DNA of 64,000 bases from Blepharisma stoltei ATCC 30299 (GCA_965603825.1 CBFDEM010000010.1:532158-596157), one strand, 5' to 3'. Shown: positions 967 through 24,858, counted from the first letter of the stretch. Notes: generated by a model not told the origin, from the sequence alone. Numbers and translations are program-made.

Positions 967-2369
967 ATGGAGCTTATGCATTGCTTCGAGCCAGGGTGCA
1001 AGAATGAGGCTGAATACTCGTGCCCATGCACCTCTCCTGAAACTCTATTCTGTGAACTGCATCGGTTAAAGCATATGAAAATCCCTAACAGAGCTCATGC
1101 TTGCAACTCGATTTTTGTAGAGCCATGCCAAGGGACAAAAGAAGAAATTCTTAAGTTTCTTACAAGAGAAAACTCAAAAAATAGCAAGCTAAGGGGAAAG
1201 ATCCTAGCATCCTTTAGCAAGCGCTTACTTGAATCAGAAAATGATATTGAAGAACTCTTAAAAAATCTTGGATTCAGGCTCAGCTGAAATAAGCAATTAT
1301 TTTACAAAAATTTCTCAAGCTCAAAAATTATTAAAATCAGAGCAAGACCCGATTTTAGGACTATTGAGTTTACAACCTGATGAAGCTATTGAGAAACTAA
1401 AAAAGATTATTCCAGCCAATCAAGAATGGTCCAAAAGTGCAAAGCTATTTTGTGTGCTCAGTGAAAAAATTGAAAAAATGATTGAGTGTTTTATTGGGGA
1501 TAAATTTGAAGCTTATTTAGATAAAAGACTGTCTAATATAGAAAACAGTCTTCAAGAGCACATTAAATCAGCCAATGAAGAGCATAAAAATATCATTGAT
1601 TCAACGAATGATCAGCTAGCAAACATCAAAGACTCTATTTCTAAGCTGATAAATGAGAATAAAAAAACGAGAGAGACCTCAAAGACTGGAAAGAAGAAAT
1701 AATGCTATAAAACAAAAAACGAAATAGACCTGCTAGATTCTCAAATCAATTACACTAAATCAAGATCTCTATCAAAAATTAATTGAAGTTTCAGATAAAA
1801 CCTCAAATGCTTCAAGAGCTAAGAGAGAAGAGATCTGAAATTTTAAATAGACCAAATGACCCAGAATTAGAGCAAGACTTTAGGAGAACCTGCTCAAGCT
1901 ACAGTAGCAGATGTCTGTGCTTGATGATCCAACTCTTCAGCAAGCTTATCAAGATTATACTAATGCTTATCGCCAAAAAACATCTCTTTATACAATTATA
2001 AAGGATTAATGACAGAACTAATTTGATTATTTACGATACAGAAAATGATAGTAAAGAAGTCAGGATAGTAGAGACTCCTAAAGCACTAAATTCTAGCACT
2101 TGTATTGCTCAGCTTCCTAATGGTAATTTATTTTGCTTTGGTAATAGACCCATTTCTGGGATTTCATTGTAATTGAATGTGAAAATGGATCAATCTATGA
2201 AAGCGAATTGTCAAATGACACTGCCTGGAGATGAATTGGAGACTCAATAATAAATGATGATTTTGCTCAAGTTTATTTGTCATATAATAAAGGATGAATA
2301 AACATTGCACTTGATGCTAGTTACTTCAAGTTTAATTTAGAGGCAAAAATATTAATCGAGCTGAATTAA
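967..2369 (+). pseudogene. Zn-finger/coiled-coil/Kelch-like propeller gene, frameshifted and internally deleted
   Basis: N-terminal CFEPGC..CPC..CELH..KH motif, then coiled coil, then propeller (CIAQLPNGNLFCFG, IECENGSIYESE). Several frameshifts between 1265 and 2010. It lacks 354 nt present in the paralog at 60118-60472. Confidence 0.75.
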
Positions 2370-2821
2370 AATAATTTCCTAATAAATAGGTCTCATTTAA
2401 TAATCTTTTTAAAATTTTTTATTATTTAATCTATTATGCAAGTTGACACGTGCTGCCATTTTAATGTATTCTTAAAGGGGGAGAGTTTTAATTCTAATAA
2501 ACGAAATCAACAGTTATTTTTATTACTGCTTATTAGGATAAGTACTTAAATTTCTAAGATCTCAGCATTATTTATTTTATGCTCACAATTGTACACAAAT
2601 GTAGGAGGATCTTACATGTATTTATTAATTAATTTTGCTAGCCATTACTCTCAAATATTATTATAAACTCGCTATAATTCATTAATGATATATTCAAAAA
2701 TTATGAGGTGTGTCTAAAAAGTAATATATTAAACGTCTTTGCATGCCCAATAAAATATTTTATATTTAAATAATAAAATTTAAGTCAAGAAAACTAGGCT
2801 TAGTATTTTAAAATAATTAAT

Positions 2822-4065
2822 TTAGCCATTATATCAAAATGAATGGTGGTCCATTAGTGATTTTTCAAAGATTTTTGCCTCTTTCAGCTTCTTTTCTTTT
2901 AAATCAAATGAATAAGCACATTGATAAGTTGCAATGTAAATTATTTCTTTATAGCAAATGGGGTATCCACAAACAACTGCATAATCTTTAATTAATGAGC
3001 ATTCTCCAATATTATTTCAAGTCATTAAATCATCGTCACTCTCATATATAAATTTGGAAAATTCAAATAAAAATACCTTTTCACCTACAGCAAAAAATTG
3101 TTTATGAACTTTAGGTGATAACTTTATTGGTAAAATTTCTGAATAAGAGTCTGTAATAGTATCATAAAAGATAGGATTCTCACTAGAAGATGCTATTAAA
3201 ATTTTGGTTTTGAATAAAGTGCAAAAGGCTCGATTCTCAATAGAAAAAGAATATTTGCTAAGTGAAAACCATCTATTTTTATCCATGTCGAATTTTACTG
3301 CAACTTCATGAGATCCTCCAAAAATATATATTTTTCCATCAAAATAAATTGCTCCTGCATGGTAGCATATAGCATAAGGTGTAATATTTCTTGAATTTCC
3401 CAATGGGTCAATAATTATTCAAGTATCATTTCAAGCATAAAACAAGCTACCATGTGGAATTAAGCATCCAAATCCATCACAGTTAAGCTCTTTATTGTAA
3501 TTATAACTAAATTTCTTTATATTTAAGGTTTCCGCATCAAAAATAGCGAATTTGTTTGGAAATCCTCTACATACAAATTTAATTACTCGAGTAATGGGAG
3601 AATAGCGCTCACAGTAATCGAAACTGTTTTCCAATGGTTCTAATTTAAATAATTCAGCTATTTTATGTTCCTTAATACTGTTTATCTCAAATTTTGGAGA
3701 CCTGATTTTTTCAGTCACCATTTTGCAGCCAGACAGCACTGTTTCGAGAAAAGAGAGTGGCTTTGAATTATCAATTTCTCTTAAAGTGCAAATTTCTGAA
3801 ATAATTTCGTTGATTTTTTGTTCATAAATTTTGAGCTTTTCCAAAGTATTTTCAGATGCTTTATGGATTTGCTGGACAAGAGAGCGTTCTTCATTGATTA
3901 TTCTTATTTTGTCAGCTTTTATATCTGATTTTATTTTAGAATATAGCTGAATAGCAGATAAATTGTTTCTTGCTTGATTTCTGAAGAATTATTTTGAGCT
4001 TTTGTCAGTTGAGAATAATCAGATATATGGTTCTTAAATAAAAGAATAGGATTTGCTTCAGACAT
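2822..4065 (-). CDS. Coiled-coil/Kelch-like propeller protein with a degenerate Zn finger; one frameshift near 3960
   Basis: ORFs 3431-3844 and 3017-3403 join through TGA=Trp and end at TAA 2822. Kelch motif AIYFDGKIYIFGG..KFD..NRW. Homologous to the 8679 family. Confidence 0.75.
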
Positions 4066-4499: not shown

Positions 4500-4835
4500 C
4501 TAAAACTCGTTAGGAAATTTTTAAAGGTTTTTGATTTGTCTACTTTATTTTCTTTTAAGTTAAATGAATAAGCAAAATGTGAAGTCTTGATAAAGCGCGG
4601 GATAGCCAAGCATAGTTTCATGATCTGATATTATTCTGCAGTGTCCAAATTTATTTCACGCTATTAAGCTATCATCACTTTTATATATAAATTGCGAAAA
4701 TTCTATTAAAAATACTTTTTCGCTTTTAACGCAAAACAATTTAGATGTGTCAGAACATAGCTGTATTGATAAAGGAGTAGCACTTAAGGACGCTATTAAA
4801 ATTTTGCTCTTAAATAGACAACATATGTGCGATTC
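4500..4835 (-). pseudogene. Decayed 3' fragment of a Kelch-like propeller gene
   Basis: Remnants KSKILIAS, EKVFLIEFSQFIYKSDD and AYSFNLKENK match the 2822-4065 C-terminus, with stops and frameshifts. Confidence 0.6.
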
Positions 4836-4926
4836 CCAATAGAATTTCTAAGCTTATAAAAATTGCACATTAGAAAATTAAGATTATGAGAAAATTAAGG
4901 GTATTTCACATAAATAAAAACTTATA

Positions 4927-5602
4927 TTATGTGCTTCTACTAATAATTGCATTTGAAAGTCATTCTAACCCTTCATTAAGCCCATCTCCAGTAATTGCAC
5001 AAGTACTTTGAATATACCAATTTTTGCCTCTAATCGGATATAGATCTAACTTATCAATTAACTCTGAGACTCCTAACGCCCCGGGCAAATCATTTTTGTT
5101 GCTGACTCTTCACTCTTTTCTTATTGGGATTTGCAATTTATACATCTCCAATTTTTATGAGTTTTTCTTATAAAATTTATAGTTTTTAATAATTTTTTAT
5201 TTACATTGCAATCTGGGAGGATAAGAATAAGGATGTTGAGTTTCTAAGGCTACTATTATTCGCTGCTTTATGTAGTTCGTCTTTAGCTTCTTCGATTCTT
5301 TCCATGTCACTCGAATTTAAAACAAAAATAATAGCATCGGTGTCGTCATAATAATAATAATAATGATACCACAGAACTCTGCTTTTCTCTTCTCCTCCTA
5401 TATCTCACACTAAAAATTGTATATTTTTATATCTAAGATTTTCCTCATTGGGCCCATTTGTTGAGACTAATACTAAAGTTTCTCCAATCTTTAATTTATA
5501 AAAAATCGTTGTTTTCCCTGCGCCATCAAGCCCAATCATAACTATACGTAAATCTTCGTGCCTGGTAAATCTACTCCAAAGATGCGATACTGAAGTTTCC
5601 AT
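4927..5602 (-). pseudogene. ADP-ribosylation factor (Arf)-like GTPase interrupted by a 118-bp insertion
   Basis: GLDGAGKTT P-loop, V(W=TGA)DIGG, NKNDLP and WYIQSTCAITGDGLNEGLE(W=TGA)L. The insert at 5104-5221 introduces a stop, and switch I is degenerate. Confidence 0.85.
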
Positions 5603-6002
5603 AATGAATATTATACCTTGTAAGATAATTTTCTAAAAACGCATCATATTATAATTATCATCCTTCATATTGGGTCAATTTTTCCATTCCTTAGCATCAT
5701 TAGATAATTCTTTTTCTAAAATTTTTAATAAATTCAGTAATTTTCATGCACTTTTTGCATTTAAGTATCTCATTGTTTTGACAGATATGAATTATTCCTT
5801 TTAGTTCAAGCATCAAAGTCATGCAGCCTATTGAGTTTTCACTATTAAAATTCAATTTATTTTATTTAAAACAAATTATAACTTATATAATTTCACACAA
5901 TCGCAAATATTTATTGGGCTATTTTATTAAGCAATACTTCTCAGACATTTCGCTTTAGTGTTCTCATAAAATTAAATGATCTTCATTATTTTTAATTTTT
6001 AA

Positions 6003-7688
6003 ATGGCTTCTAAAATGATCATAGATCGTCATAAAAATACAAAAGAGGCACTTCTTGAATTTCTTATTGATGAAAAATCCAGACAAGAAAAATCAAAATC
6101 AATACTACTTAAAATTTTCAAAGAAAATCAACACTCTTCTAAAAGCAGCCTTAAAGAATTATTAAATAAATTGAATTCCAACATTTTAGTGCTGGATTAT
6201 TATTTTACTAAGATTTTTGAAGACCAAAAAATAGTAAAATTAGAGGATGGCTCAGAATTGAACTTTTTAAGCTTAGACCCTCAAGAAGCTACAGAGATAA
6301 TGAAGACGAAGGTTCTTGCAAATTCTTATGGCGATATTGAGATATTTTGTGGCTTAGACGTGGAAATAGAGAAAATTATTGGGAACTTTGTAGAAAATAA
6401 ACTTTTAGATTTAAAAACTTCGATAAAGGAGGAGCTTAGAAATGATTTTGAAAATGAAAAGAAAAAAGCTGATGAAGAGATTGCCAATCTGAATAAAGAA
6501 ATAGGCAAACAAACTGAGCTTATAAATGAACTATATACAAAAATTAATAGTCTTCCTATGACTCATCAAAATAAAAAATCATATAATTGGCCATGATACT
6601 TTACAGTCAGCATTTTGCTTCTCCTTGTTTTGGTTTGCTTTAGTCCATTTAAAAATACAAATCCTACTTTAGTAGGCATAAAAACCAATTTTAGTAGTTC
6701 TTCAAGCAACTCTGGCAGCCTATCACAAGATCTAACTAGCCCTTCAGCAAAAACTGACTCTTTAAATGTTTCAGGTACTCCAGGAATTTATGATACTTCA
6801 ACAAAAGCTGATTCTTCAAGTATTTCAGATCAATCAGATGGTCGCTCAAATAACCACATTGATGATCTGAGTAATGCTCCTGCAAAATCAGCTGATGACT
6901 CAGAAAATCTTCCTTATAGCTCTGTAATTGAAACTAATGAATTGATAATTTGCTCTCAAAGATCTAGACAAATATATTCAGTTGACGTAAAGACCTTTAA
7001 AGCGATTAGTTTGAGCTTAGGCCCATGCTATGGGCTATATAGCAATGTATTTATCCCTACTACTAATTCAACTTTATTTTATGGCGAGTTCATGCATAAA
7101 AATTTAGATATAAATGCATTTATTCTTGACGCAGAAAAGAAAATAACGAAACTTATTTGGGCGCAAGAAAAATTGTTTCCTAGCTTGGCTTATTATGAAA
7201 ATTATGTATATGCATTTGGTAACTCAGTATCAGCGAAATACAACTGCTTACAAAATAAATGGGAAAATCTCGCTCATCTTGGACTTGACCTTTATGGTCG
7301 CCAAAGCTCTTCTGTTGGATTTAAAGGACATATTTTGATAGTTGAGCGCACTCTTTCATCACTTATAAGCTATGATATTGAACAAAATAGCTTTCAAAAA
7401 GTTGCAGGCTTATCTTTAGATTGGAGAGCAAATAAAATTATATTTTCAGCAGATAATAGAGTCTATATAATTGAATTTCCTGGGCGCATTCATCAAAGTG
7501 CGATAAATGATTTTACGGAATGGGAAATCATAGCTACTAGAACAATGGATTGCAGTGGAGAGTTATGGTCTTATGTTATAAGATTTAATGAGAAATTTTA
7601 TTTCGAATGCATAAGCAGCTATAACTCAATACTTGTAGAATTTGATCTGAAGGAAAACAAGCTGAAGACAATATCTATAAATATTTAA
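6003..7688 (+). CDS. Coiled-coil / transmembrane / Ser-rich stalk / Kelch-like propeller protein, 561 aa
   Basis: The two track ORFs are in frame across TGA 6594. Hydrophobic segment WPWYFTVSILLLLVLVCFSPF. Propeller motif LAYYENYVYAFG..KY..NKW. The N-terminus resembles the 967 gene coiled coil. Confidence 0.85.
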
Positions 7689-7789
7689 TTTATATATTCA
7701 AGTCTATACCTATCAATTGCAAATCACTATAGAATCATCTGTTAAAGCATCTATAATGTAGTGCTATGCCATACTTCCTTTGTATAATA

Positions 7790-8090
7790 ATCCTTATTAA
7801 TAGAAGCTTTCGAAGATTTTGCAGGCTTCAATAAGCTTTTCTTCAGCTTCTTAATCCTTAATCTTCCTAGCCATAAGGTTTAAGAATTTAGGGAAGTCAA
7901 TGGTCGCATTTGCATTAGGATCAACACTGTTGACCATGTCTCGAAGTTCAGCCTTAGTTGGGCTTTTTCAAATAGATTTCATAGCAGTGCCAAGCTCTCT
8001 TCATGTGATTCCCCCATCACCGTCTCTGCCGAAAAAAGAGAAAGCTTCCTTGAATTCTACAATCTACCCTTCGGTTAGTTGTTCTTCCAT
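7790..8090 (-). pseudogene. Calmodulin pseudogene
   Basis: [69 protein letters not shown], with TAG/TAA stops and frameshifts. Confidence 0.9.
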
Positions 8091-8678
8091 TTTATCATTA
8101 TTATAAAAACTAATATAAAATTGTGTTAAATTTATAATTTTAGAGACAAATTAAGCAGAGTTAGGAATGATTATTGATTATTTGCATATTTTTATATATA
8201 GCTTTAATACTAAATCTTTATATTATTAATAAAATTATATTTGTCCATCAACATAAACTCTTCCTCTCCTAAACTTATCTATATAATGAGAATCTCACCA
8301 TTCTAGTATATTTAAAATTATTTTTATCAAATTAATGAAGCATAAATTTTTGAACACAAAAATTCACTTCCTCTTCGTAAAATTTGTAAAATCCCATACA
8401 TGTTTAACAAAAAGCATGATTATAAAGAAAAATTTCTATTAATCTAATTCTTCTCTCACAATTGTTACAAATATGCCATATTTCATGATGAAAATCTTTA
8501 AAATATATAACGTTAGGGATTTTGGTAATAGATAATGATCTATTCTGAGCCATAAAAGTCCTAAAGTTTGGATCCAGCTTATGATAGCTTAAGTTTAGAT
8601 ATAATTATCAAATCATTAATAGTAAAATAATACTCTAAGTGAAAAATATAATGAAAAATCGAATTTTTTATATTAATT

Positions 8679-9971
8679 ATGTGCACTAGACTCTGCTCTT
8701 TCGAAAAATGCTCTAGTAATCCTGCAGTCGTATGCAATTGTGAAGCAATTCCTGTATTAATTTGCCAAGAGCACATTAAAAATCATTCCCAGCTTCAAAG
8801 ATCTCATACTTATACCAAAGTTTTTTCTGAAATTCGAGAAGAAGCAAGGAAATCTGCAATTAAATTATTTTCAAAAATCAAGCCAGAACTAATAAAACTT
8901 AAATCAAATATCATACAAGAAGAGCTATCAATGATTAAAGAAATCAACAAAATCTCCAAAAATGCTTTAGAAAAGCTAAAAACTTGTGAAGAAAACTTAA
9001 ATCAAATTATATTAGAAATCAGCAGCTTAAGATTTATTGATAACTCAAAATCATCGACTTTTGTAGAATCATTACTCAAAATGCAACAACAAGATATTGA
9101 AAAAATCAAAAAAATTAGAGGGCCTAAGCTTAGCATAAATAGCATTGATTCTAATTTTTTTTCTAAAATTTTCAAACTTGAGACCTCATCAGAATGTTTC
9201 GATTATCGGCAAAATTGTTGTGATAATTCCAGAGTAATTAAATTTGTATGAGGAAATTTCCAAAATATTATTGGTACTTTTGACGCCGAAACTGTAAAAG
9301 TTTATCAACATAAGCATGCATGAGATTATCATTTTGATGCATATGGGATAAAGTGTTTGCTGCCCGATGGTAACATCTTTTATGCTAAATATAGAAATCT
9401 GATCATAATTGACTCATTCGGTAATATAAAACCAATATCTCCTTATAAAATTAAGTCAATATTCTCAGCCATTTATGTTGGTGGATGCATTTTTGCGTGC
9501 TGTTCTGGTTCTCAAAGCTGGGCAAAATACATTATTCAAAGAAATGAATGAAACTTTTTAACTCCTCTTCCTCAGAGTCAAAGTATTTTTACTGATTGCG
9601 CTTTGTTTCAAAATTATATTTTATTCGGATCAAATAGCGAATCAAAAATTATTTACTACGATATGCTAATAGACTCTTTTTCAGAAATATCATCATTAAA
9701 TTTAAAAACATTAGCAGCAAAGACTATTATTGCACAAGATCGAAGGGTATTTATCATAGAATTTTCGCAATTCATATATGAAAGCACTGATAATTTAATA
9801 ACATGAAATATTATAGGAGAATGTTCCGAACTAATGCCATTTTTTCCTGTAACAAGCTATCCAATCCTTTATAAAGAAAATATATATTTTTCAAGTATAT
9901 ATGGGATCTATGCATTTGATATAAAAGAAAAGGTTACCAAATCTGTGGTTTATTTTGATTTTTCTAATTAA
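8679..9971 (+). CDS. Zn-finger (B-box-like)/coiled-coil/Kelch-like propeller protein, copy 1, 430 aa, intact
   Basis: Continuous ORF with 4 TGA=Trp codons. C-x4-C-x7-CxC-x7-C-x2-H-x3-H motif, coiled coil, then propeller blades. Confidence 0.85.
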
Positions 9972-10079
9972 TTCTACTATCTTTAATTTATAAAATTATT
10001 TAATCAGCACGATAATATGATTTTTAGCTTACACTCTGCAAATATAATGAATGAGCCTATATTTTATTGAAATATATAG

Positions 10080-10565
10080 CATTTTTCAGCTTCTTTTTCT
10101 TTAAATTAAATATAAAATGCCTGATAAGTTTGTATAATAAACTTTTTCTTCATATAATTCTTTGCCATTTTTGTTCTACTTCAATTAAGGAAAGATTATT
10201 TTTATTAAAGAGTCTTTAGCTTTCATATGCTATATCGAATTATCCTTTTGGAATGCAGGAATTAAAATGACAGCGCATAATAATAAATTCGTAAACTCTT
10301 CATCTCAAAACTGAATCTCTAACATATAATTGCTCAAGGATTTTTGAGTCACCTAAATCTCCATTATTTTCATATAGATATTCTTCATTGCCAATTGCAT
10401 AATGATTTTCCCTACCAATAATAAATATAATTTATATTGCGCTTCTGATGGAATTGATAAATTTGAAAAAGAGTCTATATCAATATCATAGATATACACT
10501 TTATTTGTGACAAGGCTCCATAAAAATGCGTAATTCTTAAATAAAGGGCAGACCTGTGAAGACAC
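10080..10565 (-). pseudogene. Fragment of a second Kelch-like subfamily carrying a 128-bp insertion
   Basis: Matches 16797-17141 and ~22117-22462. Contains frameshifts and an insertion at 10153-10280. Confidence 0.75.
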
Positions 10566-10679
10566 GAGTTCTAAGATATTCTGCTATAAGCTTAATTTTA
10601 TGGATAATTATCAAATCATTAATAGTAAATCATCTCTAAGTGAAAAATATAATGAAAAATCGAATTTTTTATATTAATT

Positions 10680-11976: not shown

Positions 11977-11984
11977 TGCATAAA

Positions 11985-13110: not shown

Positions 13111-13617
13111 GAATTAATCTTTAAAGATAATTTGTATGAAAATCTTCTTGAAAGTAGAAAACGAAAATAGCAAACTATCACTTATACTTGAGATTCTAAT
13201 CAGGGTTAAACTGCATAGCGCAGTATATTTTTTGGTTAGTATATTGCTTGATCGTAGTGATCTCTTACGTCAAGCGATTAATATTCATTCAAAGCTATTA
13301 ATAATTATTTATATTTAGACTCAAGCTATACTACCTTATATGAACAACTTTTAATGTGCTCTCTATAGTATCAATCTTTATTGCCCTGTTGATATTTTTC
13401 CAATTCTTAACATACGGCAAATGAATATAGCATTTCAAGTCCAAGGACTGCTTTTAGCTGCTTCAAAGGCAAAATTTTATCAATCCCGAATAATTCATCT
13501 TATAATTTTACTATTTGTTATATTTTGCAATTAAATAATTAAATCTATATTTAATTTAGTCATTATTCTAATGAGCATGATAATTCTATAATGAAACATC
13601 GAATTTTTATATTAATT

Positions 13618-14910: not shown

Positions 14911-15949
14911 TTCTAATATCTTTAACGCATAAAATTATTTAATCAGCACGCATAATATGATTTTAACTAACGCCCTGCATATATAAATAGAATTTACCTT
15001 AAAACTACGTTAGGCTATTAAAACGAATTTTGAAGCTAACACTGACTTCCTTTGCAAGATTTATCAGTTTTGCAGTCAGGCTGCTGTGAAAGATCTAGGG
15101 TTGGCCTTTCCTTACTTTAAGACTTCACTATTAATTAGTCAGCTTATGGATTTTTTGACCCAGAAATGGCGATGGGAATCGTTTGATTTCAAAAATTAAT
15201 TCTTGGGGCTTAGCAGGTGCTAAAGTGCCTTTCTTCAGAAATTACAGGAAAAAGACTGTTTCAATAGTCGATATGTAAATTGACGGTTTTAGGCAAGTGC
15301 AATACTTAAGAGTCGAAGGGCATTGTCACATACCTCAATTTCCTATTACAAAAATATAGAAAAACCTCTTTGATGCATATTTACTGGGCTTTTTAGATTA
15401 TTTAAGAGCTCGCCTTAGCTTAAGGTCTGGGCTGTAGCGTCCAAGTCACTAGAAAACGCACATGTCTTGGGTTTATTAAATATAAATATAACACTTTGAC
15501 TAAATAATTCCAACAAATTATAAATTTTTTATACAGCCTTTCATCTTTCCTAGTTCGAGTCAAATATAATTATATCACCATTTTTAATCTTCACCTCACA
15601 TGGTATTTCCATTAAGCTTTCACCATAATAATGCCATTCAATGGCTGAATTAGAAGAAATCAGACCCTGCCAATCTTTTGCGTAATATTTGGCAAGAGGC
15701 TATTCTCTTTACCAATTCTTATTCATACAGTTGACTTATAGATATCGATTTACAGGATATTGCCTTATAATTTTTGTCTATTTTGCTTAAAATGTTTTCA
15801 CAAGCCTTTTTCTTCTTTCTCTGGTATAAGTCTCTTTTGCTTTTTGCAAAGCTTTAAACTGTCTGATTTTTTTTTTCTCAATATTCATATATCAAAATCA
15901 AAATAAATGCTTAAATAGATTTTTACTATTCTCCAAGTTTATTTACTAT

Positions 15950-16350
15950 AAGCAAGTACATACCCAAGGTTTCCTTTGGTATGCATAAACTCTAAGGCAT
16001 GCTATAGATATTTCCTTTTAAGCATATTATTGAATTTGTGATTGCTGAATTTAAATATCAACTTTGATAAGTTTATTGATTTTTCTTAGGTTGATGCAAG
16101 ATTATGTAATTCGATTTTTAACAGGTCGAAGCATAAGGAAAGAGAGTTTATCAAAATATTTTCAATTAGAGAAGTTCCAGTAAAAGCTGATATATACACA
16201 TTCGCAATTTTAGTTCATCAGATTCAATTTCCAAGCCATTTGTAAAAGGCTTTATTGGTTTTTAATTAGTTTTTATGCCTTATAAAAGAATTTTCTTGGA
16301 AATTTCCATGGGTATTAGTGTAAGATAATTTGGATTTCTGATAAAAGAAG
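15950..16350 (+). pseudogene. Heavily decayed protein kinase remnant (second copy at ~12670-13050)
   Basis: Residual DARLCNS (DFG region) and KADIYTFAIL (subdomain IX-like), with many stops. Confidence 0.4.
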
Positions 16351-16456
16351 TTAGTATAATTGTCAAACATTTTTACTGATATTTTATACTGAACTTTTAT
16401 TTTCTAAAACAAAGTAAATTTTAGCCAAACAATTAATATTCACTCAAAGTTATTAA

Positions 16457-18240
16457 TAATTATTTATATGCAGACTCAATTTATATACTACCTTATATAA
16501 AAGCTTTTAATGTGCTCTATATAGTATCAATCTTTATTGCCCTGCTGATATTTTTCCAATTCTTACCACATGGCAAATGAATATAGCATTTCAAGTCCTA
16601 GGACTGGTGTTAGCTGCTTCAGAGGCAAAATTTTATCAATCCCGATTAATTCATCTTATAATTTCACTATTTGTTATATTTTGCAATTAAATAAATTAAA
16701 TCTATAATTAATTTAGTCATTATTCTGATGAGCATGATATAAAACCACCTGCAGTCCAAAATTATTCTTCAGCTAATTTATTAAAATATATAACATTTTT
16801 CAGCTTCTTTTTCTTTAAATTAAATCTGAAAATGCCTGATCAGTTTGCATAATAAACTTTTTCTTCATAATAAATTGGTGAACTCTTCATCTCAAAACTG
16901 CATCCTCTAACATATAATTTCCCAAGAATTTTTCAGTCACTTAAATCTCCGTTATTTTCATATAAATATTCTTCATTGCTAATTGCATAAATATTTTCAC
17001 TACCAATAATAAATAATTTACATTGCGTTATTGATGGGATTGATAGATTTGAAAACGAGTCTATATCAATATCATAGATATACACTTTATTTGTGACAAG
17101 GCTCCATAAAAATACGTAATTCTTAAATAAAGGACCGACCTGCCCTGCACTTCATGCATCATAATTAGAGGCAAGTTTATACCATCGACCTTCGCTAATT
17201 TTATATCTTCATGACATATGGTGAATCCCACTTACTAAATAAACAAAGCCATCATGATAAAATGAACACCCATACTGAGACTTTTTATTCGTTGTAATAT
17301 ACTTTACGTTATTCAAAGGATCAATGATATATGAGACAGATCCATAATGATAAAATAGGCTTCCATCAGGGAGCAAACACTTTGATGCTTGAAAATGCAA
17401 CTCTTTATCTATTTTTAGCTCTATATGATCAATTGTTTTAGTTCTTGCATCAAAAATACTTACGGGCAAGTAAAACTTTAGAAAATCCTAATTTTTTTAA
17501 AGAAACCTCTCCATAAAAGAGCAAAAAGATTTTCAAATATTTTTTATATATGATTTTTATAACAAAATCTCTTGCAATTTTTAAGACATTGAATTCTCAA
17601 ATAGAAGATTTAATTCTAAAAATCAATTTTAATATAAAATTAACTCTTTTAACGAGCAATAAAGAAGGTTTGCTCCCTTGCACAGGAGAATTAAAGTTTT
17701 TGAGTTATTACTGCTTAATTTGAACTTTAGCTTATCAGATTCAAATTGTTGAGAGCTTTTGTGATATCAATTTTGATCAATTTGAAGAATGCTAGATTTT
17801 TCTTCCATATATTACAGAAATGGAAATGAAAGCTAGAAAATGAATAATAAGCAATAATTCTTATAATGACACTATAGTTCAAAGTTCGGATGGGTGTTGG
17901 CATTCTTCAGACTGGTGGTGCTCTCTAATATTTAGCTAATTTATTATCGATCTCTTTTAGTGTCCACTATCATATCGCTCCTGTCCTTCCCTCCCTGCTC
18001 CAAGGTTCCTTGCCCACACACGAGGCCCTATATAGCGTTATTCAGCTCGCCATTCGACTTCTAGCGTTAGATTTTTAAAGGGATAATCTCTAATATAAAT
18101 TCTCTTCTGATTCTTGTATTTTTATTCAAATTTTAACAGATCTTTTGAAGCTTGTAAGGTGCTACGTGAACCATTTTTGGAGCTCCAGGCGCGCAAATCT
18201 CTTAACCGCTGTTTTAGTTTGAAGATAAGAGTTATATTTT
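16457..18240 (+). repeat. Direct repeat, left copy (~1.78 kb)
   Basis: Colinear and highly similar to 21780-23476. Its first ~280 nt also recur at ~13300-13580. Confidence 0.92.
16770..17487 (-). pseudogene. 5'-truncated Kelch-like propeller ORF inside the left direct repeat
   Basis: Open with TGA=Trp (KCLLPDGSLFY..IIDP..FYHDGFVYLVSG..IYYEEKVYY..FRFNLKKKKL). An in-frame TAG lies upstream and there is no upstream ATG. Confidence 0.7.
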
Positions 18241-18421
18241 GGTAATAAATAATTTAATATGAGACTAAAATCTTAATGATAGCATATTTAAATGGAATTA
18301 CAATAAACTTTGATATTTCTTTGACATTTATTATTTATAAGAAAAGACCACGCTTTTTTTTTTTAAGTTACTCTACCTTTATATTCAAAGGGAGGTATTG
18401 ATAATGAAACAATTCAATTGA

Positions 18422-21400
18422 TTAAGATTTTTTAAATCTCTTTTCTGGCTTTTGTTCTTCAACTACATATCTTTTTCTTTTTCTGTTATTTCTTTCCTCT
18501 TCTTGTTCTCGTAACTTATCACGTATGATTTCCAAGCCGGAGTCTTTCTTTTTGATTTTTTGAATTAATCTATCTATATTTTCGTCACCAAACTCAATTC
18601 TTTTTTCTTTTGTTAAAGTAACATCATTTTCTCTACACAATATTGAACTCTGAGAAAATATTTCTCCTCTTGCAGTACTAAAATGATTATTTATATCGAA
18701 TGCAACTTTAATGCTGAATTGTTGCTCGTTTATATGAATTGCTCATTTTCCATCAACAGTATTTCTATAAAATACAATTCCGCGAATTATCATTCGTTGG
18801 AGATAGTCATAATTTGGATTTAAAGCAACTTCTATGTACTTTTTAGCGCATATTTGTCAAAGTAAATCATGAGCCTTTTCACAGACCACAGAAATTTCAG
18901 CCTCTCCTAGCTTTTTATACTCATGAATTATAGCAACATCCCCTTTTCCACGCCTTGAAATGAAAATCCCATCAAGCTTTTTTTGGAATTTGTTAGATAT
19001 CTCAAAGCCGATAGAATATTTTGGATCATTTGCTGTTAATAGTGGTATTGCACCTGCTCCGCCTACGATAGTTTGGAAAAACTTTTCACTTTTATATGTT
19101 CCATCGTTATTTTATCAAGGATTTCTTCTTGTATCGCTCTTGAAACTTCATCTTTATCCTCTAAATTTTCAACAAATTTTTCTAACCAATCATAAGAATT
19201 AATTTGATTTTCTCCTGTTATATTTAGTCATGCATTAAGCATTTTGTGGTAAAAATATCTTCCCACTTCTTTATTAGGAACTACCAAAACATCGATTTTG
19301 TGCTTATATTCATATGGAGTCAAGTATCCTGCATGAAGCAGGAGTAAATAAGCATTATTTCTTGCCCAAGGTTGATTAATAATCGGTTCTTTCAATTTAA
19401 GAAATCCAGTTTTCATTATATCAAATAATTCATCATCAGGTTTAAGAGCTTCGAATATCGAAGTTAAAAATCTATCGTTATTATTAACATCATTTCAATA
19501 TTGATTGAGAGGTCATTGGCAATTATTAGCAGCAGAGTTCAAGCAGCTTATTATCGATCGAGAGTTGTATATTTTCTGACCCCTACATTATAACCATTAT
19601 ATCAGTCTTTTATTAACGCTTTCTGATCTATTAGATGACGGTCTGAATATTCTATTAAGTGCTTATTAAGCAGCCATTCAACATCCGCTTCAGTAAATCC
19701 AAAAAATTTTGAATATGATTTTATCGAAATATTGTAAGGAAAAAAAGCATCTAAATTAGATATATCAAGCAAAGTGTCATAATAATTTCCAGCTACAATT
19801 AATTTTTTTATGCGATAATCGATATGATCGACGAGTAACGTAATGATTTTCCATAAGAGAATCTTTATTTCTTTCTGATTCTTTTGGACGAGTCCTCTAT
19901 TAAAATTTTTATCATATTCATCAATAATAACAATAACAGCTTGCCCATGAATTAGATGAAGCATATGAGCCAAATTTTTCAGTGCTGTAATTATATTTAT
20001 TTGTGAGCTGAATTGTCGATAAGTTCTAAATAGCTGAACTTCAGTAGGCAATATTATTTTATTACGATCAATAATATGTTCCAGCATCTCAACATTTCGA
20101 TTTTTATAATTCATTTTTTCTACTCCGTATTGCTCTATTATTTTCTCTAAGTACAGACAATAGGAGGAAGTGTGCTCTTGATACAGCTTTGAAATTTCTA
20201 CTTGAATTGCTTCAAAAAGGATTTCCGGAGGTATTGATTCTCAGAAAAACCCAGGAAAAGTAAACAAAATAGTCGGAATACACCCAGCAAATTGTCTATA
20301 ATGTCCATTATCAGCATTCATTATTTTCAAGCATTTTGTGCTATCCAAATTATTTAAATCAGTGTTATTTTTCCCTCCTGTAAGTAAATACAAATTTGCG
20401 AATTGCCCATTTGCATCTTGCTCTGGATTTAAAAATGCCTTTAGCATAGTTAAATTCAATGTTTTACCCCAACCTCTCGGTCTCAAAATAGCAAATTTTA
20501 GACACATATCATCTAAAATAGCTTTAATAAACATTGTTTTATCCACATAGACAGCCTTATCATCAATCATACGTTTAAAATCCCTATCACCAGTGCTAAA
20601 AAGATAAGAATTTTTGACTCTAATTGCTGATTGTGGCGTTACAGGAGACTTTTTTAGCCTTTTCTTCATGGAAATTGGTGTTTGGAAGATATTGTGGCCG
20701 GGCAATGAGCTAATCTTTAAAGATTGGATAAATTTATGCGCCATATCATTTTTGCCTTTTTCTTTAAAATCCCTTAATATGCATAATTGATTTAAGTTCA
20801 AATTGCTTAATATAATATCCGTATCATCTTCCGATATTACCCAATCTTCCATTTCTTTTTTAAGCTTGTTTAAAATTGAGTCTTTTATCCTTCCAAGCCA
20901 ACTCAACTCGAAATTTCATGAGTCTATTTCACAATTTTGTGTCAGGGTTTCAATAATACTTTGGTCTTCAAATAGCGCTGTAATTTTATAAGCTGAGTTC
21001 AAATCAAACTGAGAAAATGAATCTAAAAAGACAGATTTGCCTGTTGAAATCAGCATAATTATATTGTACATTGATAATAGGCAGCTTTGGAGGCAATGCT
21101 TATACATTTTAATGCTATGATGATCGAATATCCAATAAGAGTTGAAAAAGCCTCCAAAGGTAGCTGATTGTCCATCAGGCCCTTTATAAGAAAATTTTGT
21201 ACAAAGCAGGTACTTAAGGAGAGGAGGCAACCTATAGTTATTTCCTGATGAATCAATCGAAAAAACTAGCTCAGAAAGGTTATACAGAGGTTCTCCGTTT
21301 ATATTTATGTAGTCCTTGGGGATAATTGCCATTGTTTGCCATATGTAGTTTTTTTCTATTTGCTCATCTGCAAGATTAGAGTTTTACTTGCATCTAATTT

Positions 21401-21742
21401 TCAATAGGCTACAATAGGCCTCTTAAGTTTTTCACCATCATTTCTAATCGCCTCTTCGATTTTCTTTGTATAAGATAGCACACCATTTACTTCATCATCG
21501 ATGGCGGGAGAATTATTCAAAATAAGCTCTGAGCCTATTATTTGAATTTTGTCTTGGTAAATATGCTTAAGGGCTTCTTGAATGCCAAAGGCAGATGCAT
21601 AGCATTTTGCTTTGCTTAAACGATCATAAGTATCAAGATTGTTAAAAACGGTGTAAAGTTCCTGCTTTAAGCTATTCATATTTTTATTTATCAAACTCAA
21701 TTTATAAGAAAATGTCTTAGCCCCTTTTTCATTTAATAGCAT
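18422..21742 (-). CDS. AAA-ATPase-like (PF09820-type) + PD-(D/E)XK nuclease (PDDEXK_9-type) protein, ~1100 aa, three frame disruptions
   Basis: YVDKTMFI, Walker A RPRGWGKTLNLTML, Walker B VIVIIDEYD, FGFTEADV, (W)YNGY, IYNSRSII, LLHAGYLT, VPNKEV. The nuclease region reads SEKFFQTIVG..FE..KLDGIF..IIHEYK..(W)QICAKKY..GIVF. The pieces join via TGA=Trp plus frameshifts at ~21380, ~19580 and ~19108. Confidence 0.85.
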
Positions 21743-21779
21743 TTATTTTACTCTAGATTTCTTTTACACTTTGCCTCAG

Positions 21780-23476
21780 TAATTATTTGTATGCAGACTC
21801 AATTTATATACTACCTTATATAAAAGCTTTTAATGTGCTCTCTATAGTATTAACTTTATTGCCCTGCTGATATTTTTCCAATTCTTACAACATCGCAAAA
21901 TGAATATGGCATGTAAAATCCTAGGACTGGTGTTAGCTGCTTCAGAGGCAAAATTTTATCAATCCCGATTAATTCATCTTATAATTTCACTATTTGTTAT
22001 ATTTTGCAATTAAATAATTAAATCTATGATCAATTTAGTCATTATTCTGATGAGCATGATATAAAACCACCTGCAGTCCAAAATTATTCTTCAGCTAATC
22101 TATTAAAATACATAACATTTTTCAGCTTCTTTTTCTTTAAATTAAATCTGAAAATGCCTGATCAGTTTGCATAATAAACTTTTTCTTCATAATAAATTGG
22201 TGAACTCTTCATCTCATAACTGCATCCTCTAGCACATAATTTCCCAAGGATTTTTCAGTCACTTAAATCTCCATTATTTTCATATAAATATTCTTCATTG
22301 CTAATTGCATAAATATTTTCACTACCAATAATAAATAATTTACATCGCGTTATTGATGGGATTGGTAGATTTGAAAACGAGTCTATATCAATATCATAGA
22401 TATACACTTTATTTGTGACAAGGCTCCATAAAAATACGTAATTCTTAAATAAAGGACCGACCTGCCCTGCACTTCATGCATCATAATTAGAGGCAAGTTT
22501 ATACCATCGACCTTCGCTAATTTTATATCTTCATGACATATGGTGAATCCCACTTACTAAATAGACAAAGCCATCATGATAAAATGAACACCCATACTGA
22601 GACTTTTTATTCGTTGTAATATACTTTACGTTATTCAAAGGATCAATGATATAAGAGACAGATCCATAATGATAAAATAGGCTTCCATCAGGGAGCAAAC
22701 ACTTTGATCCATGAAAATGCAACTCTTTATCAATTTTTAGCTCTATATGATCAATTGTTTTAGTTCTTGCATCAAAAATACTTACGGGCAAGTAAAACTT
22801 TAGAAAATCCTAATTTTTTTCAATTTTTAATTCTCAAATAGAAGATTTAATTCTAAAAATCAATTTTTAATATAAAATTAACTCTTTAACGAGCAATAAA
22901 GAAGGTTTGCTCCCTTGCATAGGAGAATTAAAGTTTTTGAGCTATTACTGCTTACTTTGAACTTTAGCTTATCAGATTCAAAGTGTTGAGAACTTTTGTG
23001 ATATAAATTTTGATCAATTTGAAGAATGCTAGATTTTTCTTCCATATATTACAGAAATGGAAATGAAAGCTAAAAATGAATAATAAGCAATAATCCTTAA
23101 AATGATATTCTTAAAATGACATTATATAGTTCAAAGTTCGGATGGTTGTTTGCATTCTTCAGACTGGGTGGTGCTCTCTAATATTAATTTATTATCGAAC
23201 TCGTTCAGTGTCCACTATCATATCGCTCCCTGCTCCAAACTTCCTTGCCCACACATGAGGCCCTATATAGCGTTATTCAGCTAATCCTTCAACTTCTGGC
23301 GTTAGATTTTTAAAGGGATAATCTCTAATATAAATTCTCTTCTGATTCTTGTATCTTTATTCAAATTTTAAAAGATCTTTTGAAGCTTTGCAAGGTAGTT
23401 GGGGAACCAATTTTTGAGCTCCAGGGTGTGCAAATCTCTTGACCGCTTTTTTAGTTGAAGATAAAAGTTGTATTTT
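21780..23476 (+). repeat. Direct repeat, right copy (~1.70 kb)
   Basis: Colinear with 16457-18240, but lacks ~85 nt corresponding to ~17499-17591. Confidence 0.92.
22090..22809 (-). pseudogene. 5'-truncated Kelch-like propeller ORF inside the right direct repeat
   Basis: Near-identical to 16770-17487 (FQAS vs FHGS). Confidence 0.7.
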
Positions 23477-23630
23477 GATGGTAGTAATATTAGACGCTGC
23501 CAGTTTAACTTGAAAGAAAAATCATTTTCTTCACTGCCTTATTAAGAGGCTTAAAAAACTTATTTAATGCTCTTGTGTTATCAACTATATAGCAGATATT
23601 TATAAAATTTAGCTTGCATTATAGTAATTA

Positions 23631-24773
23631 ATGAAACTTATGCATTTTTTCGAGCCAGAATGCAAGAATGAGGTTGAATACTCGTGCCCATGCACCTCTC
23701 CTGAAACTCTATCTTGTGAACTGCATGCTGGTAAGCATATGAAGATCCCTAGCAGAGCTCATTCTTTCAACTCAATTTTTGTAGAGCCACGTAAAGAGAC
23801 AAAAGAAGAAATTATTAAGTTTCTCACAAGAGAAAACTCAAAAAATAGTAAGTTAAGGGGAGATAATTTGCCACTCAAAGAAATTATAAAATTTGCTCAA
23901 AAACCTTCATTCTATATTTCAGATTTAGTTTACAAGGAGCAGATTCATTTGCTAAAAGATGAAATAAGAGAAATATCAACTTCAATTTGAATAGCAGAAA
24001 ATAACTCCCAAACTGTGGCTGTAAAAAAATATACTTATAGAAAGAAAAAACTTACTCGAAAATACAAAAAAGAAGCAAAATTTCTTGCTATTTTAGATTT
24101 GCTTAATCATCCATTTTTTGTAAAGTTTTATAAATTCGGCAAAAAATCATTAGAAGGACAGTTTGAGTTTTGCGTCGTTATGGAATACTGCCCTAGTAGC
24201 TTGCATAGACAAATTATGGAAAAAATTGTCTTTGGTGAAAATTCTAATTCTATCATAGCTAAAATTGTGGATAAATTATTAAGCGGATTTGTAAAGTTAA
24301 GCAGCTTAAATATTGTGCATAGAGATATAAAGCCTCAAAATATCTTAGTCTCTGAGGATGGTGAGTATAAACTAATTGATTTTGGGATTTCTGAAGTTGT
24401 TTCATCAATTTCTGAAGAAAATGAGTACTTAATTAAGGGCACACATGATTATATGTCTCCAGAACTTATTTCAGAGTTAAATAAAAATTCTCAAACGTGT
24501 GTGAAGTTTAAATATAACCTGGAAAAAGCAGATGTTTATTCATTAGGACTAGTATTTTGGAAAATTAGCACAGGTAAAAGAGTAAAAGGAATCAATCAAA
24601 TTATTTATCAAGAGGAAATGTGCGAAATTCTTAATGAAATAAAATTAAACTGACTAAGAAAAGTGCTAGAAAAAATGCTCTTGATGGATCCAGCAAAAAG
24701 ATTCACATTCAAAGAAGCTTACACATATCTGAAAGAAGATGATGATTTTATCAAAGATCTGAATCTGGCTTAA
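23631..24773 (+). CDS. Chimeric Zn-finger module + Ser/Thr protein kinase, 380 aa, intact
   Basis: The first 77 codons and ~150 nt upstream copy 815-1197. In frame across TGA 23988 to VAVK, HRDIKPQN, DFG, YMSPE and DVYSLG. Ends at TAA 24773. No GxGxxG loop. Confidence 0.9.
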
Positions 24774-24858
24774 AGTATTCGAAAGTAACCGGTAACTCTA
24801 ATTATCATATTAAAAACCATTGCAAATTTAAATTCTATTAAAGATTATTTAAATAAAA

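Follow-up and report, generated by a model that had tools for sequence, protein, structure and literature searches.

The stretch of DNA analysed here, referred to as the window, comprises 64,000 nucleotides that form the telomeric end of MAC contig 10 in Blepharisma stoltei (532158-596157; assembly of 41.46 Mb in 64 contigs). The published genome of this ciliate has 41 Mbp in 64 contigs, with CCCTAACA telomeres, UGA read as Trp and introns of 15-16 nt (PMC9942806). An initial annotation, made from the sequence alone, described about ten related genes or fragments in the window, built from a zinc finger (ZnF), a coiled coil (CC) and a propeller in changing combinations, and proposed that they form a recognition and signalling repertoire under conflict-driven evolution. 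What kind of protein does this family encode, how was the locus assembled, and does an immunity-like role account for it?

Results

Organization of the locus

The window closes on a telomere (Table 1), whose unit agrees with the CCCTAACA repeat published for B. stoltei (PMC9942806). Translation table 4 gave more long-ORF content in the window, and TGA codons occupied conserved Trp positions, indicating that TGA encodes Trp. Using this table, tblastn of the 64-kb window mapped 12 related genes or fragments at 1-25.6 kb and 59.8-61.9 kb, and the original count was therefore correct. The region from 26 to 56 kb holds long intact ORFs with Pfam matches to MFS, alpha-mannosidase, PKD channel, BT1 and Pescadillo, in line with the separation from intact core genes that had been noted. 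Intact reading frames were found in only 3-4 of the ~12 copies (6003, 8679, 13618 and the ZnF-kinase at 23631). The other eight elements have suffered frameshifts or truncation or survive as orphan propeller pieces, embedded in a mosaic of segmental duplications, which bears out the duplications and pseudogenes described around the family.

Table 1. Coordinates of the features mapped in the window
Feature	Position	Strand	Evidence or remark
Decayed ZnF-CC-propeller, gene 967	812-2363 (tblastn 967-2363)	+	Collinearity with paralogs, ORF breaks
N-truncated, frameshifted CC-propeller, '4065'	2825-4065 (tblastn 2900-3982)	-	tblastn, Kelch Pfam matches
Propeller fragment, ~80 codons	4584-4823	-	tblastn, E 7e-11 to 8679 residues 307-400
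Intact CC-TM-Ser-rich linker-Kelch gene, no finger, 561 aa	6003-7688 (tblastn 6003-7685)	+	Single ORF
Tandem paralog A, intact ZnF-CC-Kelch, 430 aa	8679-9971 (tblastn 8679-9968)	+	
Orphan-propeller-type fragment between paralogs A and B	10318-10562	-	tblastn
Tandem paralog B, broken	10680-11976 (tblastn 10663-11958)	+	DNA alignment, tblastn
Tandem paralog C, open frame	13618-14910 (tblastn 13618-14907)	+	DNA alignment
1.7-kb direct repeat, copy 1	16457-18241	.	Carries orphan propeller ORF 16765-17487 (-)
AAA-ATPase_like (PF09820) gene, not a family member	18425-21742	-	Pfam
1.7-kb direct repeat, copy 2	21780-23477	.	Carries orphan propeller 22087-22809 (-)
ZnF-kinase chimera	23473-24773; ORF 23631-24770, 381 aa (tblastn finger 23649-23831)	+	
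Secreted-type LRR protein gene	24859-25596	+	LRR_1, LRR_4 and LRR_8 matches; hydrophobic N-terminus
Kinase-CC-propeller chimera, propeller out of frame	59826-61935	-	Pkinase, subfamily homology
Telomere, (TTAGGGTG)n	62060-64000	+	~1.9-kb repeat run closing the window

Four genes (967, 8679, 10680 and 13618) had been listed as ZnF-CC-propeller forms. The product of 8679 (paralog A) is identical to the public protein P0010, and this member stands as an intact gene, but 967 and 10680 proved to be broken and 13618 is open only by virtue of a compensated shift. Paralog B (10680) carries two 1-nt deletions in its finger-coding part according to DNA alignment, falls into three frames in tblastn and is publicly annotated as two pieces of 78 and 298 aa. 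In paralog C (13618), the compensated -2/+2 shift rewrites ~33 codons of one blade, and the public product has 439 aa. Gene 967 begins with a promoter and finger (812-1197), followed by the coiled coil and a propeller damaged by a 348-bp internal deletion and frameshifts; its public annotation is just a 178-aa product (P0063). Positions 800-2400 are collinear with full-length paralogs of the subtelomeric subfamily at 85-93% DNA identity, and gene 967 is, judged from its sequence, an ordinary decayed member of this subtelomeric ZnF-CC-propeller subfamily. The same collinearity ruled out a candidate origin of gene 967 by fusion of the finger of 23631 with the propeller of 59826.

The remaining forms differ in preservation. 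The '4065' copy, described as a CC-propeller that had lost its zinc finger, does lack the finger and shares 41% aa identity with residues 53-414 of 8679, with matches to Kelch_2, Kelch_6 and Kelch_1, but it is N-truncated and frameshifted, and its public product of 299 aa starts at an internal Met. Gene 6003 is a single ORF with one TGA and has the same length in the public annotation; a hydropathy of 2.15 across 19 residues (198-216), followed by an 85-residue Ser-rich linker, supports the CC-TM-propeller form assigned to it. The two copies of the 1.7-kb repeat (16457-18241 versus 21780-23477) match at 97% and 88% DNA identity. The orphan propeller ORFs within them share 96% aa identity with each other; these pieces are present as reported, but they have no start codon, and the sequence upstream is degenerate and contains stops. 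The 10318-10562 fragment showed 73-75% aa identity to the 22087 propeller and 90% DNA identity to 16867-17142.

Chimeric and neighbouring genes

Both kinase-bearing genes of the initial annotation are chimeras that are real in the assembly. At 23631, where the frame is open and the module boundaries could be mapped, the promoter and a 77-codon finger module (23473-23861) are followed by a genome-unique 169-bp stretch and then by the kinase (Pkinase, Pfam E 6e-33). The first Zn ligand has changed from Cys to Phe, and the kinase is without a Gly-rich loop, which is natively absent from its kinase paralogs too. At 61935, a kinase (60905-61935; Pkinase, E 1e-30) is fused to a segment of the 967 subfamily (59925-60904) that comprises the end of the coiled coil and the propeller, with homology to that subfamily ending at 60904. 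The chimera itself was upheld, but its propeller is out of frame: the kinase-CC part and the propeller do not share a frame, a state that fits a 1-nt insertion near 60650 when the gene is compared with paralogs, and no canonical intron accounts for the shift. Tiny introns were likewise rejected as an explanation for the broken frames of 967 and 61935, as no GT...AG pair of suitable phase joins meaningful frames. Besides the Pfam matches, which confirm the kinase parts of both genes, the catalytic HRD, DFG and VAIK Lys are visible in both translations.

The LRR protein reported for the island was recovered by its Pfam matches (Table 1). Its gene was co-duplicated with the 23631 kinase, since both are present in the copy at the C32 locus, to which the kinase-LRR segment (24031-25386) is 92-93% identical. 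The neighbouring gene described as an ATPase-nuclease matched AAA-ATPase_like (PF09820; E 7e-13 and 3e-5) and consists of four ORF pieces that three candidate introns (20, 35 and 20 nt) could join. Its nuclease half was not confirmed: the C-terminal pieces, kept short by TGA codons and introns, gave no HMM match, PDDEXK_9 (PF08011) included, even at E <= 5. A D...EYK-like motif was seen in this gene by eye only. Because the LRR gene and the kinase came jointly by segmental duplication from or to the C32 locus, and the ATPase gene is bracketed by the 1.7-kb direct repeats, the co-location of these genes with the family looks accidental.

The state of the copies raises the question of whether the island is neutral duplication debris, with chimeras that are chance juxtapositions with open frames. 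The eight broken elements, the lost first Zn ligand of the ZnF-kinase, the frameshifted kinase-CC-propeller and a propeller dN/dS of 0.58-0.82 in the tandem triplet are all compatible with a graveyard of pseudogenes. However, 6003 and 8679 are intact and are publicly annotated as full genes, relatives elsewhere in the genome are intact and constrained, and such an explanation would cover the locus only and not the family. We regard it as highly improbable, although the locus itself may contribute little function because most of its copies are broken.

Predicted structure of the family proteins

The AlphaFold2 (AF2) model of the 6003 propeller (pLDDT 90.3, pTM 0.89) contains 23 strands. Foldseek matched it to KLHL3, KEAP1 and KLHL2 (E 8e-11 to 1e-9, TM 0.72-0.75), with designed SAKe6 Kelch proteins ranking beside KLHL3, the best natural match. 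Kelch_2 was detected at 23.6 bits (cut-off, 21.3) at window positions 3020-3418, that is, in the '4065' copy, and Kelch_1 at 45 bits in the paralog P0001; most copies in the window fell under the Pfam threshold. As modelled, the C-terminal module folds into a Kelch propeller of six blades.

The N-terminal finger follows the motif C-x4-C-x7-C-x-C-x7/8-C-x2-H-x3-H-x6-9-H, with eight near-invariant Cys/His across 137 proteins. No match was obtained against Pfam, zf-B_box included, or PDB sequences, whether single sequences or a 12-member profile was used. In the AF2 model of 8679 residues 1-190, the finger (pLDDT ~90) is followed by a 63-residue helix (residues 54-116, pLDDT 84-95), the coiled coil thus being predicted as one long helix. 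Foldseek returned no match at E < 1 for this finger/coiled-coil model. VIA-align placed the finger next to the B-boxes of COL2 (Z 5.7, rmsd 1.8 over 46 residues), CYLD (Z 5.2) and TRIM28 (B-box1; Z 5.2, rmsd 1.6, 41/43 residues), Z scores that are modest for a domain of 50 residues. The best ESM Atlas shape match of the finger/coiled-coil module was a B-box/NHL cluster (TM 0.48 over 136 residues), and its neighbours by language-model features carry zf-B_box. Together, these comparisons suggest that the predicted fold of the finger is nearest to B-boxes.

Pfam gave no RING or U-box match on the window pieces, where the proteins begin with the finger at residues 5-45, and neither domain was among the 25 commonest Pfam families listed for the 137 family proteins; the same held for BTB and BACK in both sets. 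NACHT, NB-ARC, TIR, death-fold and RING were absent from every piece scanned. The B-box/coiled-coil/variable-domain layout of TRIM proteins, invoked from the start for this family, was recovered as a resemblance at the level of predicted structure (AF2, VIA-align and Atlas shape). Because there is no RING, the canonical protein is TRIM-like and not a TRIM, and E3 activity cannot be assumed.

Size and distribution of the family

A first look at the whole genome yielded 248 finger/coiled-coil and 408 propeller candidates. Scoring confirmed at least 137 finger/coiled-coil loci (137 of 150 scored) and at least 141 propeller loci (141 of 146 scored), and a HMMER profile scan retrieved 287 representative proteins at E <= 1e-10. 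By these genome-wide counts the family is not small; it is very large, with several hundred genes in Blepharisma. The finger/coiled-coil module also occurs in Stentor and another protist. Kelch and B-box are absent from the main text and supplement of the B. stoltei genome paper (PMC9942806).

The family propeller was present in 52 of the best 150 finger/coiled-coil proteins. Pfam scanning of 137 finger/coiled-coil proteins detected TPR in 6 and WD40 in 4, and paralogs with U-box-propeller and kinase-propeller architectures exist. The view of a family with swappable parts therefore holds, as the same modules are also found with TPR, WD40, U-box, kinase and TM segments. Among 91 family matches, 56 are no more than 100 kb from a contig end, where 25 would be expected, and for 60 a neighbour is found within 10 kb. 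TAA or TAG stops occurred in at most ~14% of the finger/coiled-coil matches genome-wide. Tandem and segmental duplication, pseudogenisation, clustering and swaps agree with the birth-and-death evolution with domain swapping that had been proposed.

Sequence evolution of the propeller

Hypervariable patches of the propeller correspond to two top-face loops (B-C and D-A) per blade. By structural class, dN/dS was 0.48-0.53 in strands and 0.33-0.47 in bottom loops, and 1.25-1.66 in top loops, although the confidence intervals for top loops include 1 and the value fell to 0.96 with more divergent paralogs. Relative to synonymous change, top loops evolved 2-3.5x faster than the scaffold (permutation p = 0.0065), with dN > dS in 9/10 pairs. 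The scaffold, at a dN/dS of ~0.5, is under purifying selection. In the tandem triplet, variable sites mapped to loop classes gave a trend only (p = 0.05). The contrast between its conserved N-half and its variable propeller stems in part from unequal synonymous divergence (dS 0.06-0.08 in the N-half versus 0.19-0.24 in the propeller), which suggests that gene conversion has acted in addition to selection. Diversification of the top-face loops is plausible from these rates; relaxed constraint alone could also explain the loop variation, because the intervals include 1.

The elevated top-loop rates, with dN exceeding dS in nearly all pairs, are among the arguments for an innate-immunity-like sensor repertoire, analogous to TRIM5 or NLRs, evolving under host-pathogen or host-symbiont conflict, in which the island would couple sensors to kinase, LRR and ATPase-nuclease effectors. 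The hypervariable patches, the large clustered family with its contig-end enrichment, many pseudogenes and chimeras, and the TM anchor of 6003, which could present the propeller outside the cell, would fit such a role. However, the same intervals weaken the case for conflict, none of the immune-type domains sought was found in the pieces scanned, and the supposed effector genes appear to adjoin the family by accident of duplication. We consider this explanation rather doubtful.

The purifying selection on the scaffold would also suit an expansion of substrate adaptors or of cortical or cytoskeletal scaffolds, multiplied in a large complex cell as heterotrich kinases are, with loop variation reflecting sub-functionalisation to many endogenous targets. 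This is consistent with the occurrence of the module in Stentor and another protist, the joining to domains that are common in cellular regulation (TPR, WD40, U-box and kinase), and the low frequency of stops genome-wide. Contig-end enrichment, very young tandem copies and change concentrated in binding loops would be unusual for such adaptors, and a housekeeping expansion seems to us unlikely.

Discussion

We favour, with a probability of roughly 0.6, the interpretation that the locus is a birth-and-death cluster of a very large, heterotrich-expanded, RING-less TRIM-like family working as follows. A canonical member combines a single B-box-like finger with eight ligands, an extended coiled coil and, at its C-terminus, a Kelch propeller of six blades. 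Finger and coiled coil would assemble into dimers or larger complexes in the manner of TRIMs, and the propeller top face (B-C and D-A loops) would bind a protein or peptide ligand, which the complex may scaffold or pass to effectors supplied in trans. Paralogs with a U-box or kinase in place of the finger may illustrate outputs coupled to the propeller, putatively by ubiquitination or phosphorylation. Duplication, both tandem and segmental, probably shaped the locus itself, together with gene conversion of the N-half, exon-sized module swaps and rapid pseudogenisation, and these processes would have left 3-4 open genes among ~12.

A bolder and distinctly tentative extension, which we think probably does not hold in full, is that Blepharisma, and perhaps heterotrichs generally, maintain several hundred Kelch receptors of RING-less, TRIM-like type as a recognition repertoire. 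Selection would diversify the twelve top-face loops of these receptors, and their modules would be continually re-coupled to kinase, U-box, TPR or a membrane anchor, in a convergent solution to recognition of non-self, symbionts, prey or mates. The constrained scaffold with fast top loops and the N-terminal swaps (kinase, U-box and TM) make the family a testable candidate for a protist recognition repertoire, and it offers a clean natural experiment in the assembly of modular receptors by segmental duplication. The family, whose finger is invisible to Pfam, may account for ~1-1.5% of genes (first-look candidates: 248 finger/coiled-coil and 408 propeller loci, versus 25,711 genes). Even if it were merely an adaptor expansion, its description would usefully correct the annotation of heterotrich genomes.

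Among known systems, the nearest language-model neighbours of the finger/coiled-coil module are ciliate TLDc and U-box proteins that contain a B-box (ESM Atlas clusters; 0.81-0.86, lead-level scores only), whose C-terminal domains are unlike those of the family. NLR/STAND clusters share gene clustering, duplication-driven turnover and domain swapping, but the Blepharisma proteins have no NACHT or NB-ARC and no LRR in the same protein, and the neighbouring ATPase is a PF09820 protein encoded by a separate gene, not a STAND ATPase. Plant F-box-Kelch and other birth-and-death adaptors resemble the family in that they number hundreds of copies, form tandem arrays, include many pseudogenes and vary the propeller surface while conserving the scaffold; they belong to a different kingdom and carry an F-box, which the family lacks. 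BTB-Kelch proteins (KLHL, KEAP1) likewise place a six-bladed Kelch propeller, which in the KLHL type binds substrate through its B-C and D-A loops, behind an N-terminal self-associating module. In the family, self-association is predicted, and dimers would form through the finger and coiled coil; because BTB and BACK are missing, there is no evident link to cullin-3.

The closest parallel is with TRIM proteins, especially TRIM-NHL (TRIM2/3/32/71) and RING-less TRIM-like members. The tripartite motif has been described as metazoan-specific, and some TRIM subgroups show lineage-specific tandem expansion and fast-evolving recognition surfaces (PMC2533329). The Blepharisma proteins differ from TRIMs in the missing RING, in their single atypical finger, which escapes Pfam zf-B_box, in the replacement of NHL or SPRY by Kelch and in their ciliate host, and the likeness is one of predicted structure. 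A ciliate would here use, without RING and with a Kelch propeller, the B-box/coiled-coil/variable-domain logic that has been regarded as a metazoan invention. In both, a finger, which in the family is B-box-like by its predicted fold, precedes an extended coiled coil and, at the C-terminus, a propeller of six blades or another variable recognition domain, and in predicted structure the best neighbours of the N-terminal module of the family are B-boxes and B-box/NHL proteins.

Composition of the cluster and state of its copies

All-against-all comparison of ORFs translated with table 4, together with a tblastn map, identified 12 family elements in the window.

Family elements in the window, with coordinates from the tblastn map
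Element	Position	Strand	Remarks
Gene 967	967-2363	+	frameshifts and 348-bp deletion
'4065' copy	2900-3982	-	frameshifted, most of finger gone
Family element	4584-4823	-	
6003	6003-7685	+	clean gene, 561 aa
8679	8679-9968	+	clean gene, 430 aa, identical to public protein P0010
Family element	10318-10562	-	
10680	10663-11958	+	two 1-nt deletions
13618	13618-14907	+	open via compensated -2/+2 shift
Orphan propeller	16765-17487	-	
Orphan propeller	22087-22809	-	
Finger fused to kinase (23631 gene)	23649-23831	+	
Kinase-CC-propeller (61935)	59826-61935	-	propeller out of frame

Only 6003 and 8679 are clean genes; in the former, the propeller is preceded by a hydrophobic segment of 19 residues (hydropathy 2.15) and a Ser-rich linker of 85 residues. 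The initial annotation had presented 967 and 10680 as zinc finger (ZnF)-coiled coil (CC)-propeller genes, '4065' as a CC-propeller gene without its finger, and 61935 as a kinase-CC-propeller gene. Of these, 967 is collinear with full-length subfamily genes, 10680 is a tandem paralog, '4065' lacks most of the finger and 61935 joins a kinase to a coiled-coil end and propeller; all four carry the lesions listed in the table. Public annotation gives '4065' 299 aa from an internal Met, the compensated shift in 13618 rewrote about 33 codons, and comparison of 61935 with its paralogs suggests that a 1-nt insertion near 60650 could account for the frame break. The orphan propellers have no start codon and their upstream sequence is degenerate. 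Because the assembly is HiFi-based, the frameshifts and deletions are probably genuine. Collinearity of 967 over 800-2400 with the full-length loci L013, L055 and L057-L059 ruled it out as a chimera.

DNA self-comparison showed a duplication mosaic across the window. The segment 812-1197 is 91% identical to 23473-23861, and 1726-2355 aligns in inverted orientation with 59933-60904 at 85%. Similarity among the three tandem units (8586-10047, 10589-12038 and 13587-14986) is about 89%; small pieces of the orphan-propeller unit occur between these paralogs, and 1.7-kb direct repeats (16457-18241 and 21780-23477; 97% and 88%) flank the ATPase gene on both sides. An inverted duplicate (1-775 versus 57564-58341, 91.5% identity) contains an ORF of 160 aa with three TGA codons (58093-58572). 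Upstream, the family cluster extends beyond the window to about C10:516 kb. The sharp contrast with core genes is real, as long ORFs at 26-56 kb have matches to MFS transporters, alpha-mannosidases, a PKD-type channel, BT1 and Pescadillo. The alpha-mannosidase units (57% aa identity, within 36965-43498, +) and the MFS transporters (29%, within 28481-31285, +) form tandem pairs, so that tandem duplication here is not limited to the family. As a whole, the locus is a fast-turnover cluster with many dead copies.

A second assembly, GCA_914767885.1, contains the same locus (window 5000-16400 corresponds to L054:1-21390) with some 19 additional inserts (83-911 bp each), on a contig of 782,495 bp versus 596,157 bp here; this copy is evidently a MAC+IES, germline-like version. 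In all three tandem paralogs, an 87-89 bp insert occupies the same site, some 474 nt from the start of the coding sequence, indicating that the duplications occurred in the germline with the IES already present. An Arf-family GTPase ORF (5204-5632, -; PF00025, E 7e-14), publicly annotated as 72- and 133-aa products, may be broken or IES-interrupted in the other assembly.

Telomeric (TTAGGGTG)n of about 1.9 kb closes the window, with variant units scattered among otherwise perfect 8-mers over 62060-64000 (e.g. ~62400, 62750, 63100, 63500 and 63650-63830). The window corresponds to C10:532158-596157 of the assembly (41.46 Mb, 64 contigs). The published HiFi-based genome has 41 Mbp in 64 telomere-to-telomere contigs, and CCCTAACA telomeres, UGA as Trp and introns of 15-16 bp were reported for it (PMC9942806). 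Table 4 translation gave more long-ORF content in the window, and TGA occupies conserved Trp positions of the propellers; search queries were TGA-free pieces or TGA-free paralogs throughout.

Predicted folds of the modules

An AF2 model of the propeller (window 6900-7685, 25-row paralog alignment) reached pLDDT 90.3 and pTM 0.89, and Foldseek matched it to Kelch domains (E ~1e-10, TM ~0.74), including KLHL3, KLHL17, KEAP1, KLHL2 and designed six-bladed Kelch proteins. Pfam Kelch matches were weak on the window copies and clear on paralogs. In the finger, eight Cys/His are almost invariant among 137 proteins (C-x4-C-x7-C-x-C-x7/8-C-x2-H-x3-H-x6-9-H), and Pfam and PDB sequence searches gave no match. 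AF2 of 8679 residues 1-190 predicted the finger with pLDDT ~90 and one helix spanning residues 54-116. Foldseek of this model returned nothing significant. VIA-align ranked the B-boxes of COL2 (Z 5.7, rmsd 1.8 over 46 residues), CYLD (Z 5.2) and TRIM28 (B-box1, Z 5.2, rmsd 1.6 over 41/43) just above ZZ and RING domains, and by Atlas shape search the best match, over 136 residues at TM 0.48, was a B-box/NHL cluster, with TRIM-NHL E3s next; zf-B_box among language-model neighbours provided leads only. The predicted structures thus support, with moderate strength, the proposed B-box-like finger plus coiled coil as the N-terminal module. In one subfamily member (L057:1165-2313, contig C38), four tandem copies of a ~36-residue unit lie inside the coiled coil, indicating that its length varies through repeat expansion.

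Chimeric genes and their neighbors

The proposed ZnF-kinase chimera is real in the assembly: the 381-aa frame of ORF 23631-24770 is open and consists of three parts. The first (23473-23861, promoter plus 77 codons) matches three genes of the subfamily located on this contig at 91-92% identity, and copies close to the ends of other contigs at 81-87%. The second (23862-24030) is unique in the genome at the DNA level; its 169 bp encode a genuine N-lobe of a kinase subfamily natively without a Gly-rich loop. The third, from 24031, is a kinase-plus-LRR segment 92-93% identical to a locus on contig C32, where the kinase is a pseudogene. This kinase subfamily normally has a ~300-aa helical N-terminal region, whose place the finger has taken in this gene. 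No second genomic locus matches across the junction, and the first Zn ligand of the finger is Phe. At C32, about 750 bp with a Glu/Asp-rich open frame separate kinase and LRR (L049:445-1195, C32:604.9-605.6 kb), and an ATPase-gene-family fragment lies beside the pseudogene (L049:2211-2907).

In 61935, finger-subfamily homology is confined to 59925-60904, ending at 60904, and the kinase is similar to that found in kinase-propeller genes at other loci (L012). The element is thus a kinase gene that gained the CC end and propeller of the subfamily and was frameshifted afterwards.

The kinases and LRR protein noted initially were confirmed. For the putative ATPase-nuclease (18425-21742, minus), the ATPase half matched PF09820, but an HMM search found no support for the nuclease half. 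Candidate introns of 20, 35 and 20 nt would connect the four ORF pieces of this gene; they exceed the 15-16 nt typical of B. stoltei. The initial annotation considered the locus an immunity-like repertoire, which by analogy is possible; against this, the pieces scanned contained no immune-type domain, and the co-location of LRR, kinase and ATPase genes is explained by segmental duplication.

Family size and architectures across the genome

The finger/CC query found 137 loci among 150 scored (248 candidates) and the propeller query 141 among 146 (408 candidates) in the B. stoltei genome, all counts being lower bounds. Loci occur on most contigs, frequently in tandem arrays. Among the 91 finger/CC matches located on contigs of known length, 56 lie within 100 kb of a contig end, against 25 expected, and for 60 the nearest neighbor is no more than 10 kb away; since array members are non-independent, this pattern is safe in direction only. 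Among 1.84 billion proteins, the finger/CC profile matched 934 representatives at E <= 1e-3 (287 at E <= 1e-10); ten sampled matches comprised seven from B. stoltei, one from Stentor coeruleus and two others, one of these from a gene-dense eukaryote.

The modularity deduced from a single window proved to be genome-wide. Among the best 150 finger/CC proteins, the family propeller is present in 52, and 45 have a length below 250 aa; a Pfam scan of 137 of them detected TPR arrays in six and WD40 propellers in four. The family propeller also follows a U-box in P0003 and kinases in P0005, L011 and L012, and it precedes TPR in P0004, P0006 and L058. Long ORFs of 721 and 748 aa (L058:2837-4999 and L059:589-2832) combine the propeller with a C-terminal TPR array, a further recurrent architecture near contig ends.

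Evolutionary rates of the propeller

In the tandem triplet, dS was 0.06-0.08 in the N-half (dN/dS 0.35-0.79) and 0.19-0.24 in the propeller (dN/dS 0.58-0.82). The contrast between the halves is thus partly synonymous, which points to a 5' half that is homogenised by gene conversion, or younger, and not to selection on the propeller alone. Variable sites of the triplet lean to top-face loops (A versus B, 0.32 versus 0.13, p = 0.05).

The 967/59826 subfamily alignment (59826 being the propeller end of 61935) has short hypervariable patches amid a nearly invariant scaffold, located after the strand-B glycines and before strand A, i.e. in the B-C and D-A loops of every blade. With columns classed from the AF2 strand map independently of their variability, the classes being carried over from the model of a 25-30% identical paralog, and with indel columns, the most variable, left out, dN/dS in five paralogs was 1.66 for top loops (bootstrap CI 0.89-3.44), 0.48 for strands (0.28-0.81) and 0.33 for bottom loops (permutation p = 0.0065), with top-loop dN exceeding dS in 9 of 10 pairs. 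The corresponding values were 1.25 (0.85-1.86), 0.53 and 0.47 in eight intact paralogs (>=70% identity), and 0.96, 0.42 and 0.43 in eleven (>=60%). The scaffold is under purifying selection, indicating that the family is functional, and at the canonical Kelch binding face the rate is neutral or slightly higher. Loop dS is not elevated, making patchwise conversion from distant donors unlikely in the loops. The top-loop rates fit diversifying selection acting on some of the sites, but relaxed constraint may also account for them.

Comparison with known systems

The family is best read as TRIM-like Kelch proteins without a RING, in which the finger/coiled coil would assemble the protein and the top face of the propeller would recognise a ligand. 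The family belongs with Kelch proteins by its propeller, and not with BTB-Kelch or NLR proteins. TRIM proteins require a RING, which Pfam scans found neither on the window pieces nor within the 25 most frequent domain families of 137 family proteins; the finger is B-box-like by predicted fold (Z 5.2-5.7), not by Pfam or PDB sequence match. The tripartite motif has been described as metazoan-exclusive, with B-boxes noted in some protists (PMC2533329), and the TRIM resemblance would therefore reflect either deep homology of the B-box/coiled-coil unit or convergence.
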